A stretch of DNA of 64,000 nt, from NCBI RefSeq assembly GCF_000150275.1, contig NW_002060945.1, positions 8,944,011 to 9,008,010 on the forward strand, in the 5' to 3' direction. This DNA is from Trichoplax adhaerens (lineage: Eukaryota > Animalia > Placozoa). Of the stretch, positions 30,333-43,400 are shown piece after piece (positions within the stretch are counted from its first letter, which is position 1; the number at the start of each line of letters is the position of its first letter). The notes beneath the pieces were generated by a model, which saw nothing but the letters and a program-made list of their open reading frames with translations, was not told where the DNA came from and did not search any database. A program made the translations under genes and the position numbers.

Positions 30333-31915
30333 AAGCACAAAACACGTACTGTACTCTTGTCCATGTCTTCGTCCTGCGCTCGAGTGCTAGTCTATCAGTG
30401 AGTCAGTCCTACAAGACGTGTAGACTAAAAGGTGAAGCACACAACACGTACTCTTGTCAGGCTTCGAGTGCTAGTCTATCAGTGAGTCAATCCTACAAGA
30501 CGTGTAGACTAAAAGGTGAAGCACACAACACGTACTCTTGTCAGGCTTCGTTCGTCCTGCTTCGAGTGCTAGTCTATCAGTGAGTCAGTCCTACAAGGCG
30601 TGTAGGCTAAAAGGTGAAGCACACAACACGTACTCTTGTCCATGTCTTCGTCCTGCGCTCGAGTGCTAGTCTATCAGCGAGTCAGTCCTACAAGACGTGT
30701 AGACTAAAAGGTGAAGCACACAACACGTACTCTTGTCAGGCTTCGAGTGCTAGTCTATCAGTGAGTCAATCCTACAAGACGTGTAGACTAAAAGGTGAAG
30801 CACACAACACGTACTCTTGTCAGGCTTCGTTCGTCCTGCTTCGAGTGCTAGTCTATCAGTGAGTCAGTCCTACAAGGCGTGTAGGCTAAAAGGTGAAGCA
30901 CACAACACGTACTCTTGTCCATGTCTTCGTCCTGCGCTCGAGTGCTAGTCTATCAGCGAGTCAGTCCTACAAGACGTGTAGACTAAAAGGTGAAGCACAC
31001 AACACGTACTCTTGTCAGGCTTCGAGTGCTAGTCTATCAGTGAGTCAATCCTACAAGACGTGTAGACTAAAAGGTGAAGCACACAACACGTACTCTTGTC
31101 AGGCTTCGTTCGTCCTGCTTCGAGTGCTAGTCTATCAGTGAGTCAGTCCTACAAGGCGTGTAGGCTAAAAGGTGAAGCACACAACACGTACTCTTGTCCA
31201 TGTCTTCGTCCTGCGCTCGAGTGCTAGTCTATCAGCGAGTCAGTCCTACAAGACGTGTAGACTAAAAGGTGAAGCACACAACACGTACTCTTGTCAGGTG
31301 CGTTCGTCCTGCTTCGAGTGCTAGTCTATCAGTGAGTCAGTCCTACAAGACGTGTAGACTAAAAGGTGAAGCACACAACACGTACTCTTGTCAGGCTTCG
31401 AGTGCTAGTCTATCAGTGAGTCAATCCTACAAGACGTGTAGACTAAAAGGTGAAGCACACAACACGTACTCTTGTCAGGCTTCGTTCGTCCTGCTTCAAG
31501 TGCTAGTCTATCAGTGCGTCAATCCTACAAGACGGGTCTATTGTGCAGGTCGCATGCCCCCAATAACTTCAAGCACAAAACACGTACTGTATCACTGTAT
31601 GTACTGTACAGTGTACAGTACAGTACTGTACGGTACTGTACTCTTGTCAGGTACGTTCGTCCTGCGCTCGAGTGCTACAGTAGTCCATCCGGGAGTCAAT
31701 CCTACAAGACGGGTCTACAGTATTGTGCAGGTCACATGCTACCAATAACGTCAAGCACAAAAACCGGTACTGTATCACTGCATGTACTGTACAGTGTACA
31801 GTGTACAGTACAGTACTCTTGTCAGGTACGTTCGTCCTGCGCTCGAGTGCTAGTCCATCAAGGGAGTCAATCCTACAAGACGTGTAGAATTGTCTATTGT
31901 GCGGATCGCATGCCC
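30333..31915. repeat. Higher-order minisatellite (84+98+97 = 279-bp period) with degenerate right end, upstream of ERG
   Basis: GTGCTAGTCTATCAG at 30384, 30468, 30566, 30663, 30747, 30845, 30942, 31026, 31124, 31221, 31318, 31402 and 31500. Confidence 0.95.
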
Positions 31916-34900
31916 CCCCAACATTCATACAATTCTTATCCAAGTACAGTACAGTAGATAGAATTCTAGAACGTCAGATCATTCATTTCCAATACAAATA
32001 CTTGTAATATGATAACAGTAATAAGAAGCACGGGTGAAATCATCTTCCTCGCTTCTTGGTGTTGATGATTCCATAAATAAAATAATTAAATACTGTACGA
32101 TAACTAAGGCGACCATTCGCAACGATTCAGCGTTTACTCGGAGCTTTGCAGCGCTATTGCAAACAACCACACCGGCTACTATTAATTATTTATTTATTTA
32201 TTTATTACACAGTATTATTATTCACTACAAATCCTTGCAGTGATGACGTCATACTAACTGCCGCGCACTACTTGATGTGCTGAAGGTTCAAGAACTGATT
32301 CTAATTCTACCCCCAACGTATACAGTATAGTAGTAATATACAGCACAGTACGTATAATGTAAATCGTTTACTAAAGGCTAGAGTTCAAAATAGGGACTAC
32401 TTCATTTCTTACAGTAGTATCTGGTTCAAACGAATGCTATTGATTCCTAATCTCGATCGATAACACAGTTCTGTAGAATATGACAAGACATGAAAGCCAA
32501 CACGAGCACCGGCATTCACTGTGTGTGTGCTGTATAAATTGCGGTGGCTATCCAATCCATTTGATAAACGTAAAACTTTAACCATACAATCAAATTAATG
32601 GACAGTGAATCATTCTTCAGGCAAAGTAGAATAACACTGCTATTGTATAATGCTATTGAAAAGAGAATACTTGGTGCAAGAGTCGAGAAAATGTATTTAT
32701 TACGATCGCTCGTCCATACGATATTTGTGGGGAAGGGGGAAAAATTGAATAATTTAATACAAGGACTGAGGGTCATGAAATACTGTACATTTCAAATTTA
32801 TTGATAGCTATCAGTTAAACACTATTTCGTTGCTTATTTTAATGGCATGATTGTTAGCTGTCTTTTTATTCATGATCAATGGCTTGATCAAGAGTAAAAA
32901 GTAGTAGAGTACAGCATAACAACAACAAAAATGGAACAAATTGAAAAATCTTAGCGGTTGATGATATCATAGGTGTAATTATTAGTACAGTATTATTCGC
33001 TCAGGTGTACGCTACGCGTTTTTTTAAGAGGTGAATGATTTGATCGAAAATGTTCAGTCTTCACAAAGGGTGCATTACTTAAAAAAACGCGTACGGTACA
33101 GTTACACATTGTTCTATTGGTACAACATCGGAAAACTGATAATCGTCATCAATAACATCAAAGTGTTGATAGCATACGGCAGGTATTCTCATATTATTCA
33201 GTCTTTGCCAAGCATATGGAGAAATGAAGGCATTCAGTTTGTGGTTTACATTCCCACGTGGACAAGGTTACTTGATACTTTCACACGGTAGTAGGTTTAG
33301 ATGTGCCAATAATACTGAACAGTGCACGTGCACTAGAGTAATGTTGTATTTGTGTTGATGATCGCTGCATCCGAGCAGGAATTGTATGAAAGTTCTAATT
33401 TGTGTATTTTGTATTTAGAAACTGGAAAGAATAAGATAATAAAATAAATAATATAATATAGAGAAGATACAGTACTCCACATTATGTTCTCAAGCACTGT
33501 AACCGACTGCAGCTTTAAGCTGCAGTGTAAAGTCTACCAGATTAGGGAGTGTACTAGTCGCTCTACTATTCACCATTGACATCCAAATGAGCTGGCAGGT
33601 TGGTTTGTATGATTTTCACCGGTAGAGTAGGTGACCAAGAAAAAATACGGTGGCTTAGAAAAGTGATAGGCCTACACATTTTCTTGTACGGTACAGCGCG
33701 CTTACTTCATATCTCTCTCAGTGTACTTTTTGTTCGAGGTACATGCTGTAAGAGTAAAAATCTCGATCGCTACTATACCGTTATTGTACATATAAGAAAA
33801 GCAGAGACTTTAACCCCCAAAAGAGTGCCCATAATACCTGGCAGGTTTATTTTGTATTGATTGATTCATTCTCTCAACCTCATTTCAGTGCGTTCATCGG
33901 ATTTCCGATTGAAAGAAGAAGGAAGTTGCAAAACGCTGCTGTAGAGAAGCATACGGTGTCCTATCTATAATGGAGTAGTGTTGGTGAATTCATTTCTGCT
34001 AGCAATTTGTACAGTTGAATACTCGTCTTTCATCGTCACTCCAATCCATCGAGCTGATGCTCTTTACAAGTCCTGGACCGGACCCTGAGTGCACAAGACA
34101 GCGTTCTTTTGTTTTACTTGTAGTCCTCTAAATAGGACAGGAAGCGGTCGGATTCAATATAATAAAAAAAAAAATATGGGCTGACTCTTTTACTGATCAT
34201 TTCAACTAAAGCGTATATCACAGGTGATATATTATATGCTGTCCATTGAACTGTCTCCCAATCATTATCGGCAGCGTTGGTATTGTCTATGTTAGCATAT
34301 GTAGTAGTATGGACCACTAGAAATAGACTTGGGCTGGGATTCATAGGAGTAACATTGATGATGTGAAGTTACTGCTTCCAAGCAAAGCTTAGCAACAGGT
34401 AATGGGATGGGATGTCATAGACAGTAAAATTACTTCATTTAGAAAGAAAAATATCAGTCCAATTCAGAATCGACTGTTTGCATCACTATCGTACTTCAAC
34501 CCCATGTTTGACTTTCATTGTTGACCAAATAAGGCTAAATGTCTGTCTGTCTAAAAGCGTGTGCAGTGTGCACTCAGTTTACAGTACTGTACTGTAGGTG
34601 GATGGTCCATGTACTGTACAGTACTGTACAATGTACCGCGGATTGGACTGCACACTACACGCTAACCCCAGCTAGCAAAAACCTGCTAAGCGGTTCGGTT
34701 CGGAGTAAAAAGTATTCGGTTCAGACCCGAACCGAACCTCGGACAGATCTAAAACTTTGTACAGTACAGTGTACAGTACTGTGCTTCACGCGTTTACTCA
34801 AGCGAACCTTTCTCAACTCGAATCTCTATATGGACAGTACAGTACGCAGCCGCTAACTAAACCTTGGCCTTGTTGATCATTGCAATCCTTTTACCTACTG

Positions 34901-35044: not shown

Positions 35045-38000
35045 ATGTACCGATCAGGATTGTTAGTAGTAAGCGATCAATTCAAGTCCAGTGCCTTCAA
35101 GTTCTTATTGAAACGAGCCGCACAACATGTCCGACAGACGTTGTATGTTCATTATGAGCAATTGGACAAGGTAAGGCTTTGTATCATGTAGGTGCAGTAC
35201 AGTAGAAAGGAATGGATGCATATCCACTATCGGTAGCATCAAGTAGAAATTGGCACTACAGATTGCGTGAAAAGTAGATGTCGATGGTAGATTATCCATT
35301 AATTAGTAGTGAATAGTGAATACTACCTTGTAGCCTTGAAGCCTACAACATAATTTTGAATACATTGACATCAGTGGGTCTGTCACGGCTAAAGCGCCAA
35401 TGAAGAGCAAAATCTTTTTTGAATTTCGAGCTTGAGACGACTATGCAAGTGCCTTGAAATACAATTTTCATCCTATTCAACCATTTTATTGCTCTATGGA
35501 AGTGTTAAATTGTATAGCATACTGGAAAAGAAACGAATGCAATTTTATTTCCTTTCTCTGTAGTAAGTAATCTTGCTTGCTTAAAGTATACTGTATGGAA
35601 GTACAGTACTACGCGTATTGTACTTTTCTTTCAGCCTTTAGCCGTAACAGATCCGTAGCAACGAATCACACACTATGGTAGTGTAATGTCGAAATGCTGC
35701 AATAGAAATTGTATGCAAAATAGGCTAGACACGAAATATAAATTGCATTCGTTATTCTGCATTAGACGCTATTCAGTGGACTCTCAGTGAGTTCATAGGA
35801 ATGAATCATGATTCATTATGACCAGTATACACGTACCATCAAAATGTCGACATTTTGACCAAGGAAATTGTATACAAATTGAACACAAAATAGGTGCCCA
35901 CAATAAATTACCTATTCTTGAATATTGCACCCTTTAAGATTACAACATTGATGAATCTAGAATACAAGCTATTAAATTGATACATCCATTTTCAATATAT
36001 CTGCAGGAAAAGAAGATCAATGATAGCCTAGTCCGCAAGCAGTATCAGTTAATTATCAAATATATATACAATTCCGCATCAGAAATCAACAATGAATTGG
36101 ATATCAGAGTATTGTTACCGACGACTATCGGCGAATGGAGCAAGCGAGAAATTGCTAAAAGTGTTGATGTAGCTTTACAAGCATCCAATGATAACTTGCA
36201 GTCTACAACTAATCTGGACTTGAGATCTTCGCTAATCAACAAATATTCTCTCAAAGATAGCGACCTCTACGCTCATGAAATTTTAGATTTAAGCGATTAT
36301 GTTGAAAATAATAATATTGAAGACCATCTAGAAGAAATTGGTAATCACTAAACCAATAAATACTGTAAATTAGTAATGCAAACAATCATGTTTTCAATTG
36401 CTAATATGCAATTTGCAAAGTCATATTCCAAAATTGAATGCAGATATTTCGTACGTATTTGTTGGGTGTACGAATGCACGCATTTCAATGAAGGATCACA
36501 CACAAAAAATGTAATGTACTTGTAAAGCGTAGTACTATATATGCAAAATGCTCATCAATCATTCATAATTGTTTCTATTTTGGTATTATTTTGTTTTTCA
36601 TGATTAGATGGTGATATCTACCCAAGTGTTATAATTGGAGGCACATTTGATAGATTGCATAATGGCCATAAACTATTGCTTTCAACAGCATCTCTCTATT
36701 CTCAGAAAGAACTGTATGTGGGTGTAACTGATGGCCCTATGGTAGCGAATAAAACTTTATCTGAGCTAATGGAATCAACACATACACGCATTGCACGCGT
36801 CAAAAGGTACAAACTAAACTTTCAACTGTAATCATTGGTAAATGCCAGATGCTAAGTGATAAATATAAATAGAACCACGAATTATATGCATTTCCTAGTC
36901 AGATTTTCAATGTCATCAAAATATACTTAAAGACACATGTCTAAAAATTATTGTTCCATCTTGTGCTCTTCTTATCTTATCTCATGAGTTGTTGCTAGAT
37001 ATTACTTGATTGCATGCTGAGTAGCAACCGATAAATCGCTAGCATCTATTGTATTCATGCCCGGATATAATACAAGCATGAGATAAAATATATACAACAT
37101 AAAGGAGTGAAGGCTTGTAATACTGTACTGGCATCTTTTCTAAGTAACGAAATCGATAGTAACATAATGAAATAATCCTTTCTGATTATAATCTGAATAA
37201 ATCGCCATTAACGCGTCAGTTAAAAGCTTATACAATCATTACCGCATTAATTATATAGCAAAAGTATTACAGGGAGTCGACATTAGAAGAAATATAAAAC
37301 TTACTTAGTTATTTTTATCTACTTGCTTTATTAACACATCGGTCGAAATAAAAGGTTTGGTTAAGACCATCAAAATTGCTCATAGTTAAGATATGCTTAA
37401 TACATTATAGACAATTCATTCTGTAATACATAACTTATCGTATCTAAATTCCATACGTTTTTATAGTTTCCTACGTGACATTCAACCTTCAATACAATAT
37501 CATGTAGTTCCAATTATTGATCCATTTGGTCCTTCAATAACTGAAAAAGATATACAGTGTATCGTCGTTAGTCAAGAAACATTAAAAGGCGGTAGCGTCG
37601 TAAATGAAGAAAGATCTAAGAAAGTTCGTTGTGTCAATGATATAACAAATGTAAATAGACTTATTGTGTCTGTACTACAATAATTATAATTGACCATTAT
37701 TTAAATTTATTAGAATTATGATCCTCTTGTCATCAAGAAAATTGACCTAGTAGCAGCTGAAAGTAATAATCAACTGGATTGGATGCAGGATGTAAAAATC
37801 AGCTCTACAACATTACGTCAAAAAATTCTTAGTGATCTTTTACAACCATTGAAAGTGCGTCAAGTTTTGCTAATGGTTGATCGCTACACTATTTACCGGA
37901 TCTTTACATACTCCTATAATAGGATATGTAACTAGACATTATTACTTTTATACTATGCTTAGGATGAGAAAATAAACGCTCCCTGGACTAAGAAAATTGA

Positions 38001-39367
38001 GAGTTTTCTTCTGCCGGATATACCGAAGCAACGTCTACCTTACTTAATTGGGCTCACAGGCGGAATTGCTAGTGGGAAAACATCTATTTCAGCACGGCTG
38101 GAAAAATTAGGAGCAGCCATCATTAACTGTGATAAGGTATGCTAAATAACCCTTATACTGCATGATAAATCACGAAATAATAGCTAAGACTTCAATATAT
38201 TGAACATTTATTTTTCAATAAAATTATATTAGCTTGCTCATAAAGCCTATCTTCCTGGTACTAAATCTTACAGTGAAATTTTAAAAGTGTTTGGAAAAGG
38301 TTGGTTATGATGTTAATACCTGCATGCACTCTTGCTTAGAAGTTTTTGATCCGACCTTACCTACTTTCGTGCTAATCGTTATATTGAAATTTAAAACATC
38401 GTAAATATTAGAGCTAAAATGGTCATCAAATAAATCCTTTCACATTTATCATATTTATTATACTTCAGGGATTATCGGCGAAAATGACTGCATTGATAGA
38501 AAGTCATTAAGTGCAATTGTATTTGCCAATGCTGTATGTGCAGACAATTCGATGCCAGCTATTACATTGAAGCTATACTGTACTGAGTAACTATCTTAAA
38601 ACTGAATAATGTAGGATCTATTGGAGAAGCTTAATAATATTGTGTGGCCAGCTGTTGCAGATCTAGTACGACAGGAAGTCCAAATTGCTGCTACAAATGG
38701 TTAGATTGGTATAGATTTATACAATAGAATAATTCTCCACATGCGTTCGCTGTAAATTACCTCATATTAATGCACGTAGTAAAAAACAATATTTAGGAAC
38801 TTCAGTTTGTGTTATCGAAGCTGCGCTCTTGCTGGAAGCTAACTGGAAGAAATTCTTAAATGAGGTTTGGGTATCGACTATTCCAGTCAAGGAGGTAAAT
38901 TATCGATCGTTACATTTTAATAGTTTTATTGAAGCCATGGCTATCATTATACTAAGTATTACCTGCTTTTGGCGACTGATATCATTAATAATTATGAAAT
39001 TAAAATTTTAGGCAATTACTCGGGTAGTTAAACGAGATAACGTCAATGAAGAGCAAGCGAAACGGAGAATTGAATCACAAATGACTAATGCGGAACGCAT
39101 CAATCACGCTGATGTTGTCTTAACAACATTATGGGAGCCTGAAATAACACAAAAACAAGTAAGTTACATACGTAGTTTTCAGGTTCCCCAACTTCAGCTA
39201 TTGGCAAATTAGAGGCCATTAATAATGCTTTTAAAAAATGATTTTGGGCTTACTGGTATATTTTATATATATATGATACAAAGGTTGAATTTGCGTGGCA
39301 ACAACTAAACCGAAGAATCGGCCTTTATCAAAGTCTGTCTATTGGCCATCCTATTGATAACAGGTAA
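35045..39367 (+). CDS. COASY: Bifunctional coenzyme A synthase (PPAT + dephospho-CoA kinase), 12 exons, ~558 aa in the short form
   Basis: Exons 35045-35170, 36007-36340, 36608-36806, 37467-37623, 37714-37854, 37963-38136, 38233-38299, 38469-38533, 38615-38699, 38797-38894, 39012-39158 and 39284-39367 join in frame (1677 nt). N-terminus MYRSGLLVV..TLYVH; PPAT motifs GGTFDRLHNGHK, DPFGPS, VVSQET, KISST; DPCK P-loop GLTGGIASGKT; terminal TLWEPEITQKQVEFAWQQL. Confidence 0.95.
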
Positions 39368-39426
39368 ATTACAACTTTTACTATTAGCGAAGGTCCTGTA
39401 TCGGATTAATTATAAACTATTAATAG

Positions 39427-40402
39427 ACTCCAGATGATATCAGACAAGCTTCGTACCCAGTACTCAATAGAAAATGGTAAAGACTTGTTACAATTGGATA
39501 CAACCAAAAAGAGGTTGGTATGACGTTAGAACAAGGCGAGTTATTGAAGATTTAATAATCAGCTGATTTTGCATAGATCGACGATTACAGCAATGCTTGA
39601 CCTCTGTGAGCTCTTCTCCTATTGGCTAAAGGTAAGTAAACTTAAATTTTAAAACGTTAATTATCTATAGCAACGGGCCTATTTTTATTTCTGTATAGGA
39701 TGCCGACTTAGTTAAATTGGCTATCATTTTAGCACATTGCGACGATCAAAAGGACGTTTCAAGATTTTTAGATTCAATTTCTTCACATGAAAAGGTATTT
39801 ACTATTGCACTAGTTCCTTTGATATTTCAATTTCTTTATTATTGATAGCACCTTTTTATTTGCAGGCTTTAAGGTCTATACACGAATGTTTAGATCTGCA
39901 TAATGATTTACACAACTCAGGTATGGGATAATTTATATTTTCTCGAAAGAATCTGAGATAGATGAATAATTTTTTTTATTATTTAGGCTATCGTAAAGGT
40001 AGAACTACGCTAGATGGTGACTTTATAAACGATATGTACTTCATCGGATCATTTTTTACTGGTGATGTCAGTGTTAGCAATTCTGATATCTGCAGGCGTC
40101 AGGGGTAAGTCTACACGTAATAATTAAAGTTGAAATATCAAGTTGGAGCGTCCTCATAATTACACACTTATTTTAAATAAGACTGACGACAGACGAATAT
40201 ATCAAATTAGTCAAACAAAGACCGATTTACAGGTATACGTGTACCTTGATTGCCATCAATTACATAATGCTTCTACCGTAGAAAATATGGAAGATATTGA
40301 TCGTATAATTCATGTATGCTGAGTTAATTTTCGATTATCTTTAGGACACATCTATGTCAGCAATTTTTGGAGGGAAGATTGGAAAAAATTGTAAACGCAT
40401 AA
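39427..40402 (+). CDS. Seven-exon in-frame C-terminal extension of COASY (~173 aa), degenerate HD/COG4339-like domain (tentative)
   Basis: GT-AG exons 39427-39513, 39577-39631, 39699-39794, 39866-39920, 39987-40104, 40182-40232 and 40345-40402 have matching phases and no internal stop. They join to the donor AG|GTAAAT at 39363/39364. The domain assignment is by eye. Confidence 0.75.
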
Positions 40403-43400
40403 CTTGTATATTTTTGTTTAAAGTTCTGGATGTGACTGATCAAAGTTTCTGAAGTAGCTAAGAAATAATTATTATATTCTATTAATGTGCTACACTTGGT
40501 ACTTTAAATAGGTGAAATTATTGAAGTAATACGCTGTAGAATACAATTCTTTAGTTGTTCTGATTGGGCGCTCTTTAAAACTACCTTCATAATTTTGTTT
40601 TTGCGCCATTAAGCGTTCTTTGTAAGCTATTAAAATTGTTATTTAAATCTTATGACATATCTTGGCGGGCATCGAAATCTATGCACTGTACTTAGGACTT
40701 TCTACTCTTAAATTCGAAATACAAACCTGCAGTATGTCTACAACCTTAAGGATTAAATAATAAATTGCGATAATTATTTTTTATTATATTAGTTGACCTT
40801 TATGGGCAACATTTATAGCTGATGTTTTATAATACATTTCAATCTTATGAAACGTTATAAATAAAATTGGCATATAATCATCCTTGTTCTATTTTGATAA
40901 ACTCATATGATATAAAATTACAGAGGAGAAGATCAAATGAGCATACAGGAGTGATTTGGAAATAGAGTAATTCATAAAGAAACTACCACATTAAACTCGC
41001 ATCAATATATCCCACAGTATACGTTATACATCTAAAACTAGTAATGCAAGGCATTCAACAATATTTTTTAATATAATTACTTTTTGCCCGCAATTTCATT
41101 CGTCAGGGATAATACTTGCTACTAATCATTATAAAACAATTGTTGAAGCCAGCATCGTTTTTTCTCATATAATAAACTGATAGGTAACTTGTTATCTAAT
41201 GCACCGATGAATTTCTCGTAGAAACTAGGGTACATATATATGTTAGACCATATCAGTGAGTAAATTAGCTTTTTCAATGCTTAGATATCACGATTAACTT
41301 TCTCAATCATTTATTACTGTTTCTGTAACGATAAAATTTTTACGAATACAACAAATTGAGTAATATATTTTCACTCTAAAAAATATAAATACACATGTTT
41401 AGTATTTACTATTTGTATACAATACGATTTGATATAAATAGTGAATTTTTAATATATAGTCATAACTTTTTTAAGTATAGACAATAATGCATTTTCTAAT
41501 AGTTTAAAATATAATGTTCGAGTATTTTCATATATTTTTAAGTAATAATATGTTGAACTGCTTTATAAAATATTGCAGTACTACAGTATCATAAATTAAT
41601 TAGGAAGTTGTGGTAGATTTTACAAATTATCTAAAGCCTTTCATCGTCTAATTAACGCTATTCGAGCATTGACTATTCTTAATGAGTAGTAGTTATCAAA
41701 GAATATATCGTGATAGTGATGAATTATAACGTATCTAACCTGTAGAACTTGCTACTTTTTTATTATATCGGCATATTTATACTAGTAGTCTTCCTGTTTC
41801 AATAAATATATGTACAATTATAAAGAAATAACGAATGCTCCCAAGAGATTCTTAAACAAATAAAATGAAATATTACGTAAATATTTTATGACGATGTCGT
41901 TGAATATTGGGCTGTGTAATATAATAGATTAATAAATGATTATCGAGAAGAAATTTATAAGCTCTACATAATATCAATGGAATGATTGACATTTTAGAAT
42001 TACCTTTTAGGTTATCTACGCGTAAAAATATTTCTTTATTGTAATATTTAATGTAGACATAAATTATATTTCTGATCGATGGTGACAATCAATTATATGT
42101 AGCTTGATCATGAAGGTAATACATATGAGAGATTCGATCTTCTGTATTTGGTCTATCATCATGTAAAAAATATCTCAATAAATGCTTGATCTAATTGTAC
42201 ATGAATAAATATGAGATAAATTTAAATTGTAGGCCTCTAATGACTGAGAATGCGATAGCTTAATTAGTGGAAAAATAATAATTGAAAGGAGTATGGTTAA
42301 TTTATCCAGAATATGTAATGAAAATTGTTTACTATTCATTTTAGGGATCAACATTTAAATACTACCGAACTTCCTACTTCCGATAACGATCAAATTAACG
42401 GTATAAAATTTATAAAGTATGTTAGTTGGTAAGTAAGTCGCGATATTTACTATATTGAGAAAAGCGAACAATCTTTCCTTCAATATTATGTCTATCGTAT
42501 CGTTATCATAATCGAGTAGGGAACTTTTCTTAAAAAGTCAAGTATGATAGTAAAAATTATTGATAATGTCGATGAATATATCACACGCACAATACCATTT
42601 TGCTTCAATCAAATTATTGATCATGCAATAGGAAATGAGTAAAAAATTGAGTTATTCTAAAAATCTGTATTAATGAATACAAGCGATCTATTTATATAAA
42701 TCTTCAATTCCGTATTGTATTGAAGAAATCCAGTTATTCGACTTGTGCGGCCATCAATAAGTAAATGAATGTAATTGCATGCATGACAGTATTCTAAACC
42801 TTATTCAACGCTTAATAGATGTATTTTACAATATGTTACTTATGTTATAATTGACAATTTATTAATTTCTACTTTGCGTAGGCGTTATATCCTATTTAAA
42901 GGAAAAAACAAAAAATATATAAGAATTCAAGTAATCAACATAGCATGAGATGTCAAGAGAAGGAGTGGAAGAATTAGAAATGATCCAAATCAAGTAATGA
43001 ACAGATTATTGAAGAGTTTAACAATATTACAAAAATAGAATGGAAAATGGAAGGGAAAACGGAAAAAGCATAAACAATAAAGAAAGAATAAAAGAAAAAA
43101 ACATTCACTTATTACAATTAATAGCAGTTATCCACGCGACAAGAAAGTACTTGCAAAAAAATTTAAAAATAACTGAATACCGGTATTAAATTAGTTTTTG
43201 GCAAGATGACTTGGGATTGGATATGGTTTTCAAGAAGTTAGCTGGTAATATCCGAAATGCGTGACTGATTGAAGTGTTAACTAAAATATGATTGGCTATG
43301 ATAGATTTTAGGTATAGAAAAAGAAAAAATTATTAGGAGATAAAATAACATAAGGACGGATTATGTAATAAGAATTGTCCTCTGTATTAGTATAAAAAAT

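Follow-up and report, generated by a model that had tools for sequence, protein, structure and literature searches.

A probable third module on the CoA synthase of Trichoplax adhaerens, encoded by seven unannotated small exons

Does the gene for coenzyme A (CoA) synthase in the placozoan Trichoplax adhaerens end where the gene of other animals ends, or does it run on into a third module? This core enzyme is known in animals, as COASY, with two catalytic domains and a short tail. We analyzed a stretch of 64,000 nucleotides (nt) from contig NW_002060945.1, hereafter called the window, which is AT-rich eukaryotic DNA with short introns, and which carries on its plus strand a gene starting at ATG 35045 whose sequence supports its assignment as a bifunctional CoA synthase. 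As in animal COASY, a phosphopantetheine adenylyltransferase (PPAT) domain with an HxGH-type motif is followed by a P-loop dephospho-CoA kinase (DPCK) domain in one gene, but unlike animal COASY the gene in the window would have seven more exons, coding for 173 residues past the DPCK end. A reading of the sequence that preceded this analysis (the original prediction) had proposed that these exons continue the COASY frame and that the resulting tail resembles a catalytically degenerate HD phosphohydrolase of the COG4339 type. To our knowledge, a COASY with a third domain at its C terminus has not been described. Among the results returned by a literature search, no HD-type tail of COASY and no fusion of an HD domain with dephospho-CoA kinase or PPAT was described, apart from a passage in PMC11898892 that is taken up in the last section.

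Seven small exons beyond the kinase domain

The exons that follow the usual end of the enzyme are listed here together with the poly(A)-signal hexamers downstream of them. Each of the exons is delimited by its translation, its phase and the chain search described below.

39427-39513, plus strand: extension exon 13, LQMISDKLRTQYSIENGKDLLQLDTTKK, containing an ATG (39434) that a separate gene could use
39577-39631, plus strand: extension exon 14, STITAMLDLCELFSYWLK
39699-39794, plus strand: extension exon 15, DADLVKLAIILAHCDDQKDVSRFLDSISSHEK, whose best ungapped matches to HD profiles (12-16 bits) fall in two different places
39866-39920, plus strand: extension exon 16, ALRSIHECLDLHNDLHNS
39987-40104, plus strand: extension exon 17, YRKGRTTLDGDFINDMYFIGSFFTGDVSVSNSDICRRQ, present as a single copy in the genome searched (105.6 Mb, 1414 contigs)
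40182-40232, plus strand: extension exon 18, LTTDEYIKLVKQRPIY
40345-40402, plus strand: extension exon 19, THLCQQFLEGRLEKIVNA, ending in the stop codon TAA 40400-40402
40629-40865, plus strand: cluster of poly(A)-signal hexamers past the stop of the long form (ATTAAA at 40629 and 40752, AATAAA at 40759 and 40860)

All seven extension introns read GT..AG and measure 63, 63, 67, 71, 66, 77 and 112 nt. The phases are consistent across 19 exons, and the coding total of 2193 nt corresponds to 731 codons including the stop, that is, to a protein of 730 amino acids (aa), in which the long form adds 173 residues beyond the DPCK end. The donor of the last exon of the usual enzyme, exon 12, reads cag/GTAAAT and has the same form as the exon 10 donor, gag/GTAAAT, and the phases match. 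The seven in-frame small exons of the original prediction, with their GT-AG boundaries and consistent phases, were recovered with coordinates refined by about one base; its peptide agrees piece by piece with the translations of the individual exons, and its estimate of about 730 aa agrees with the cumulative coding length.

The probability of finding such a chain by chance depends on the splice rules applied. Chains were searched with exons of 50-120 nt and introns of 60-115 nt, using dinucleotide shuffles of the region as the null. With plain GT-AG boundaries, chains of at least seven exons were obtained in 3.5% of 200 shuffles, and at least 520 nt of coding sequence in 2%; under these bare rules the chain is not overwhelming. 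The real donors are all of the form RG/GT (six of the seven AG/GT, the remaining one GG/GT), and in 200 kb of the genome AG precedes GT at 4.7% of 19,506 GT sites. When the search was restricted to RG/GT donors it returned exactly the seven exons, with 520 nt of coding sequence, and none of 1000 shuffles reached five exons (the maximum was four); five control stretches of the window gave one exon each.

The composition of the exons points in the same direction. Their GC content is 0.375, whereas the introns are at 0.281 and the downstream DNA at 0.284, a contrast of the kind also seen for the upstream COASY exons. A codon model, trained to tell long from short open stretches within this genome, gave the extension +2.3 bits over 168 whole codons; only 2% of open non-coding sets reached this score, and among held-out coding sets it falls at the 37th percentile. 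The hexamers AATAAA and ATTAAA are absent between position 39367, where a short form of the enzyme would stop, and position 40122 (about 750 nt), and six of them occur in the roughly 770 nt past the long-form stop, four of these being clustered at 40629-40860. Collectively, GC content, codon usage and poly(A) hexamer positions agree weakly with a coding extension. The exon peptides are of ordinary protein composition, and the downstream DNA translates to AT-rich noise. A gene on the minus strand beneath the region was considered as well and was rejected, because its translations resemble AT-rich noise.

A fused tail, a separate gene or non-coding DNA

On this evidence, all of it drawn from the sequence, we hold it to be quite probable that the seven exons are genuine coding exons of the COASY gene and encode a fused tail. 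We infer that exon 12 is spliced from 39363 to 39427 and that six more junctions follow, so that translation would pass the usual DPCK end and yield a 730-aa protein made up of PPAT, DPCK and a 173-residue tail. Retention of intron 12 would give the ordinary 558-aa enzyme, and one gene could thus yield both forms; since the stop codon sits inside the donor, retention would at the same time switch the tail off. Because no recognisable set of catalytic motifs is seen in the tail we take it to be non-catalytic, and it may act as an accessory module on the DPCK end, be it a lid that senses ligands or regulates the enzyme, or a domain used for docking. The twelve exons of the usual enzyme and the stop codon of its short form are the following.

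35045-35170, plus strand: COASY exon 1, with start ATG and 42 codons, read in the sequence (boundaries and phase)
36007-36340, plus strand: COASY exon 2, N-terminal, ahead of the PPAT domain (open frame, boundaries)
36608-36806, plus strand: COASY exon 3, start of PPAT with GGTFDRLHNGH (PF01467, E 5.5e-08, 33.5 bits on 36610-36804)
37467-37854, plus strand: COASY exons 4 (37467-37623) and 5 (37714-37854), remainder of PPAT (open frames, GT-AG boundaries, phases)
37963-38136, plus strand: COASY exon 6, start of DPCK with the P-loop GLTGGIASGKT (PF01121, E 2.7e-07, profile positions 1-31 of 180)
38233-38894, plus strand: COASY exons 7-10 (38233-38299, 38469-38533, 38615-38699, 38797-38894), middle of DPCK (open frames, boundaries, phases)
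39012-39158, plus strand: COASY exon 11, end of the DPCK Pfam domain (PF01121, E 3.9e-09, profile positions 137-173 of 180)
39284-39363, plus strand: COASY exon 12, the "normal" C-terminal exon, VEFAWQQLNRRIGLYQSLSIGHPIDN plus AG, donor cag/GTAAAT (translation, boundaries)
39365-39367, plus strand: TAA ending the short form upon retention of intron 12, inside the exon 12 donor site

These 12 exons were delimited from 35045 to 39363 by GT-AG boundaries and consistent phases. The (T/H)xGH-type motif that marks PPAT is found in the exon 3 translation, within GGTFDRLHNGH, and the P-loop domain that marks DPCK lies C-terminal to PPAT within one chain of frames, joined by predicted splicing. Exon 12 (39284-39363) reads VEFAWQQLNRRI...PIDN plus two bases; if intron 12 is not spliced, the frame continues as ..PIDNR and terminates at TAA 39365-39367, giving a PPAT-DPCK protein of 558 aa that is in itself a complete PPAT and DPCK enzyme.

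Additional sequence evidence for one of the boundaries comes from a 60-aa open reading frame of a related organism in ENA (P0124), which is 78% identical to the exon 11 stretch over an aligned part amounting to 73% of the query. Beyond the common ..ITQKQ its residues are, by eye, unlike those that the intron in the window would encode, and it supports the exon 11 boundary only. The source of this reading frame is ENA contigs of up to 677 nt, and a public ENA assembly therefore contains DNA from a second lineage that is placozoan-like.

Several results weigh against a fused coding tail. The RG/GT rule, though it is the standard metazoan donor consensus, was picked after the sites had been viewed. 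The codon score of 2.3 bits is far below that of the upstream COASY exons, which reach about 12.6 bits for a like number of 168 codons, and a first and cruder codon model, which was too weak and was replaced, did not place the coding frame clearly above the off-frames. The extension introns, at 63-112 nt (five of them at 63-71 nt), are short compared with the upstream introns of 81-836 nt, and the exons are shorter too. The short form is already of the usual COASY length, its 558 aa being near the length of the human enzyme. Furthermore, exon 17 (38 aa), when searched against 1.84 billion cluster representatives, matched only three unrelated repeat proteins with E values of at least 1e-4, no candidate came out of a homologous-protein search with the open stretch that surrounds exon 15, and a scan of JGI metagenomes with exon 11 found no relative. 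With exon 17 present in no protein among these cluster representatives, the tail is unannotated, as the original prediction had it, and has no close relative on record.

An alternative that we regard as improbable is that COASY ends at TAA 39365-39367 and that a separate small gene of about 170 aa starts from ATG 39434, in which case donor 39363 and acceptor 39426 would be there by coincidence, or would serve only a rare read-through isoform. Such an arrangement would fit with the position of the ATG 8 nt past the acceptor, with the 558-aa short form being a full enzyme, and with the uniformly smaller size of the extension introns and exons compared with those of COASY; moreover, only two codons lie between acceptor and ATG, so that the open frame across the junction carries little information. 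It is difficult to reconcile, however, with the distance of only 67 nt from the short-form stop to the next ATG, too short to hold both a 3' end and a promoter, with the lack of any AATAAA or ATTAAA until 40123, and with a good exon 12 donor, of the same form as that of exon 10, and matching phases. In addition, exon 17 occurs in no annotated small protein, and operons and spliced-leader trans-splicing are not known to us from placozoans, which we also count against a separate gene.

That the region is non-coding altogether, being 3' untranslated or intergenic DNA whose open stretches and GT/AG pairs fall into place fortuitously, or else what is left of an old, decayed gene, would agree with the 3.5% of shuffles that give a seven-exon chain under plain GT-AG rules, with the modest codon score and the first model's failure to rank the frame above the off-frames, and with the lack of a homolog of any exon in the searches made, but we think it about as improbable as a separate gene, given that 0 of 1000 shuffles and 0 of 5 control stretches came near the chain once the donor consensus was applied, that exons and introns differ in GC (0.375 versus 0.281), that only 2% of open non-coding sets exceeded the codon score, and that the peptide composition is ordinary and unlike that of the other frames and the other strand.

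The surroundings of the gene contain a number of repeats. A large tandem-repeat array with units of 84, 97 and 279 nt in 4-12 copies occupies positions 30351-31882 of the window, about 3 kb upstream of the COASY start, and is followed by a second, 175-nt array; the first array accounts for a local GC peak and two long spurious open reading frames. A run of palindromic words resembling GTACAGTACTGTAC is found at 34560-34830, just upstream of COASY exon 1, and short repeats of 5 and 17 nt resembling the GTACAGTACTGTAC words occur at 31584-31642. A scan of the region for bacterial promoters and terminators was set aside as irrelevant for a eukaryote.

Comparison of the tail with HD phosphohydrolases

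If the seven exons encode a fused tail, the question is where it came from. By eye, stand-alone COG4339 HD proteins contain short blocks in the same order as the tail, where DADLVKLAI..AH can be placed on the family's d..avqlAiwFhD, LDGD on lDaDL, and RPIY-R-T on RPRIYRT. The tail differs from these proteins in that no exon gives a significant score and in that HYH and HD are missing.

Neither Pfam nor NCBIfam contains a model of the COG4339 family, and a seed was obtained by scanning genome contigs for the C-terminal motif quoted in the original prediction, where one of 120 loci (L015) was a true member. This member has 3599 relatives at E <= 0.001, and the best 120 of the 3599 carry the JGI label "predicted metal-dependent HD superfamily phosphohydrolase". 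The family was found in a further 10 of 50 diverse prokaryote genomes, and a profile built for it weakly recovers the solved HD hydrolases 3dto, 3b57, 3gw7 and 3djb.

Every extension exon was scored separately, which has low power for pieces of 16-38 aa. In hmmsearch the exons reached at most 0.4 bits against a profile of 120 sequences and a second one of 18, in hhalign the probability was at most 4.8% (best E 0.008, for exon 17, in 16 comparisons), and local alignment with five single COG4339 members gave z values of at most 2.5 in 35 comparisons. The family profile had 0 matches at E <= 10 in the whole T. adhaerens genome. Per-exon searches of Pfam (seven pieces, 0 families at E <= 10) and NCBIfam (three pieces) gave no match, PDB searches with exons 13, 15, 17 and 19 gave nothing meaningful, and the ESM Atlas returned for exon 15 only generic helical or TPR neighbours below 0.9. 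The null result with PF01966 on all seven exons says little, because genuine COG4339 members reach only 17.7-19.3 bits on this model and fall below its cut-off of 22. With Pfam, NCBIfam, PDB, HMM and hhalign comparisons of the exons all at noise level, the proposed resemblance to COG4339 HD proteins is not demonstrated.

The outcome of ungapped comparisons depended on the profile. The best segment, DADLVKLA on DaDLaiLg, scored 16 bits, with p 0.013 for one profile and 0.18 for the other, and YRKGR.. on yraGr.. scored 15.6 bits (p 0.003 and 0.16 by profile); all other ungapped segments were within shuffle range. Chaining the blocks in exon order gave z values of 1.1-2.3 and p values of 0.03-0.145 against within-exon shuffles, and the mapping shifts with the profile. 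The motif placements of the original prediction held in part: for five of the seven exons they are among the top three ungapped placements, but the DADL of exon 15 fits the DaDL motif of the family equally well, which contradicts the proposed register. In that register, all that would remain on by-eye alignment with family member A1 is one H in LAH-C-D, another in LDLH, and LDGD. As regards the RPRIYRT-type block, exon 18 ends in ..QRPIY and exon 19 begins with TH, the split codon AG+G between them coding for R, and the ungapped comparison of KLVKQRPIY with aflarpriy gave 6.6-8.1 bits, within shuffle range (p 0.63). The absence of the HYH and HD metal ligands was confirmed, since neither dipeptide is present in any extension exon translation; the tail does not carry the HD-superfamily set of metal ligands (H...HD...D, which in this family takes the form HYH, FHD, ..H, DaD).

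The sequence case for an HD origin of the tail is not made. Granted that the tail is real and fused, we put its descent from a COG4339-type HD domain at somewhat less than an even chance, and taken overall a decayed domain of this type is a doubtful explanation of the tail. Should it nevertheless apply, the tail would be without its former metal site but would have been retained on the enzyme, where it would sense nucleotides of the CoA pathway. It could then be seen as an animal vestige of an ancient, repeatedly formed partnership of the HD family with PPAT, comparable to the bacterial fusions described below, and such a partnership may perhaps exist in phages and candidate-phyla bacteria as well.

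Bacterial CoaD-HD fusions and the meaning of the tail

The bacterial PPAT, CoaD, can be fused to a COG4339 HD domain, a possibility that had been raised by the original prediction. The COG4339 profile was run on 401 sampled Pseudomonadota, 34 of which had a match, and the four longest open frames were inspected. Genome G327 encodes a 375-aa fusion protein (L155:276-1400), where residues 6-156 match TIGR01510 coaD with 110.9 bits (cut-off 103.3) and PF01467 with E 9.9e-13, and where the C-terminal part matches the COG4339 profile with E 2.6e-27. Long frames at the HD genes of G354, G291 and G306 were rejected as fusions, because by eye they are GC-rich read-through.

The fusion is rare, accounting for one of the 34 family matches in the 401 Pseudomonadota, and a full-length match was found only in G327 itself among 301 genomes of its class. 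Its gene is flanked by genes for a sensor histidine kinase and a TonB-dependent receptor and is not part of a CoA operon. In the ESM Atlas, clusters of PF01467 proteins of 360-383 aa from Pseudomonadota, phages and Minisyncoccota score 0.96-0.99 to the fusion and are to be taken as leads only, while clusters named "Cytidylyltransferase-like/HD domain-containing protein" and "HD superfamily hydrolase of NAD metabolism" are weaker neighbours (0.77). Like the gene in the window, the G327 fusion has PPAT followed by a C-terminal module in one polypeptide. However, its HD half keeps HYH, FHD and the other family motifs and scores strongly, whereas the placozoan tail scores at noise level and is without those ligands, and in the gene of the window DPCK sits between PPAT and the tail.

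We take the COG4339-type HD proteins to be the family IPR009218/PTHR21174. According to the passage mentioned in the introduction, the InterPro "HD phosphohydrolase" IPR009218 is "Phosphopantetheine adenylyltransferase (PTHR21174:SF0)" in PANTHER, and fungi, Metazoa, archaea and viruses are given as groups that have the domain (PMC11898892). The bacterial fusion and the PANTHER name raise the prior that a domain attached to an enzyme with PPAT stems from the HD family, and they support an HD origin of the tail indirectly. The original prediction may have chosen the family by that very association, and since the family was perhaps picked in this way, the support from the fusion is not independent of the motif reading.

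A related kind of partnership is known from NadD-YqeK-type pairs, in which an HD hydrolase is either fused to an adenylyltransferase of cofactor synthesis or found beside it. These pairs differ in belonging to the NAD pathway and in using another HD subfamily, one that PF01966 matches, and we see in them no evidence of kinship with the placozoan tail.

A conserved gene neighbourhood of the HD family and CoA synthesis was also considered and was rejected, as 0 of 20 neighbouring open reading frames in 11 loci carried CoA-synthesis domains. Other associations were seen in the course of this analysis. In a Chitinophagaceae metagenome-assembled genome (L131:1429-2904) the HD family has a distant relative whose fusion partners are a YitT-type membrane domain and DUF2179, and in a Bacteroidota metagenome-assembled genome (L130) a distant member adjoins the gene of a Pycsar effector (PycTM) and a fragment of polyphosphate kinase. 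The HD gene of a Xanthomonas locus (L127) follows a gene for a LigT-like 2',5'-phosphoesterase, and that of an Ornithinimicrobium locus (L124) lies beside a DUF4031-NUDIX gene; both of these neighbours act on nucleotide phosphoesters.

The tail is thus probably real and fused, and it may or may not descend from an HD domain. If true, a third and unannotated module would give the placozoan CoA synthase an architecture new to the last step of CoA synthesis and might offer a starting point for studying the regulation of that step, and the extension would be one more case of mini-exons overlooked by gene callers. The bacterial side result may matter more widely than the tail: at least one genome encodes CoaD in physical fusion with a member of a large bacterial HD family that has no known function, and this Rosetta-stone link makes the function of the family testable with CoA-pathway substrates. 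If the tail should prove to be a decayed HD domain, this would in turn suggest that CoA-pathway nucleotides are the natural substrates of the bacterial HD family.

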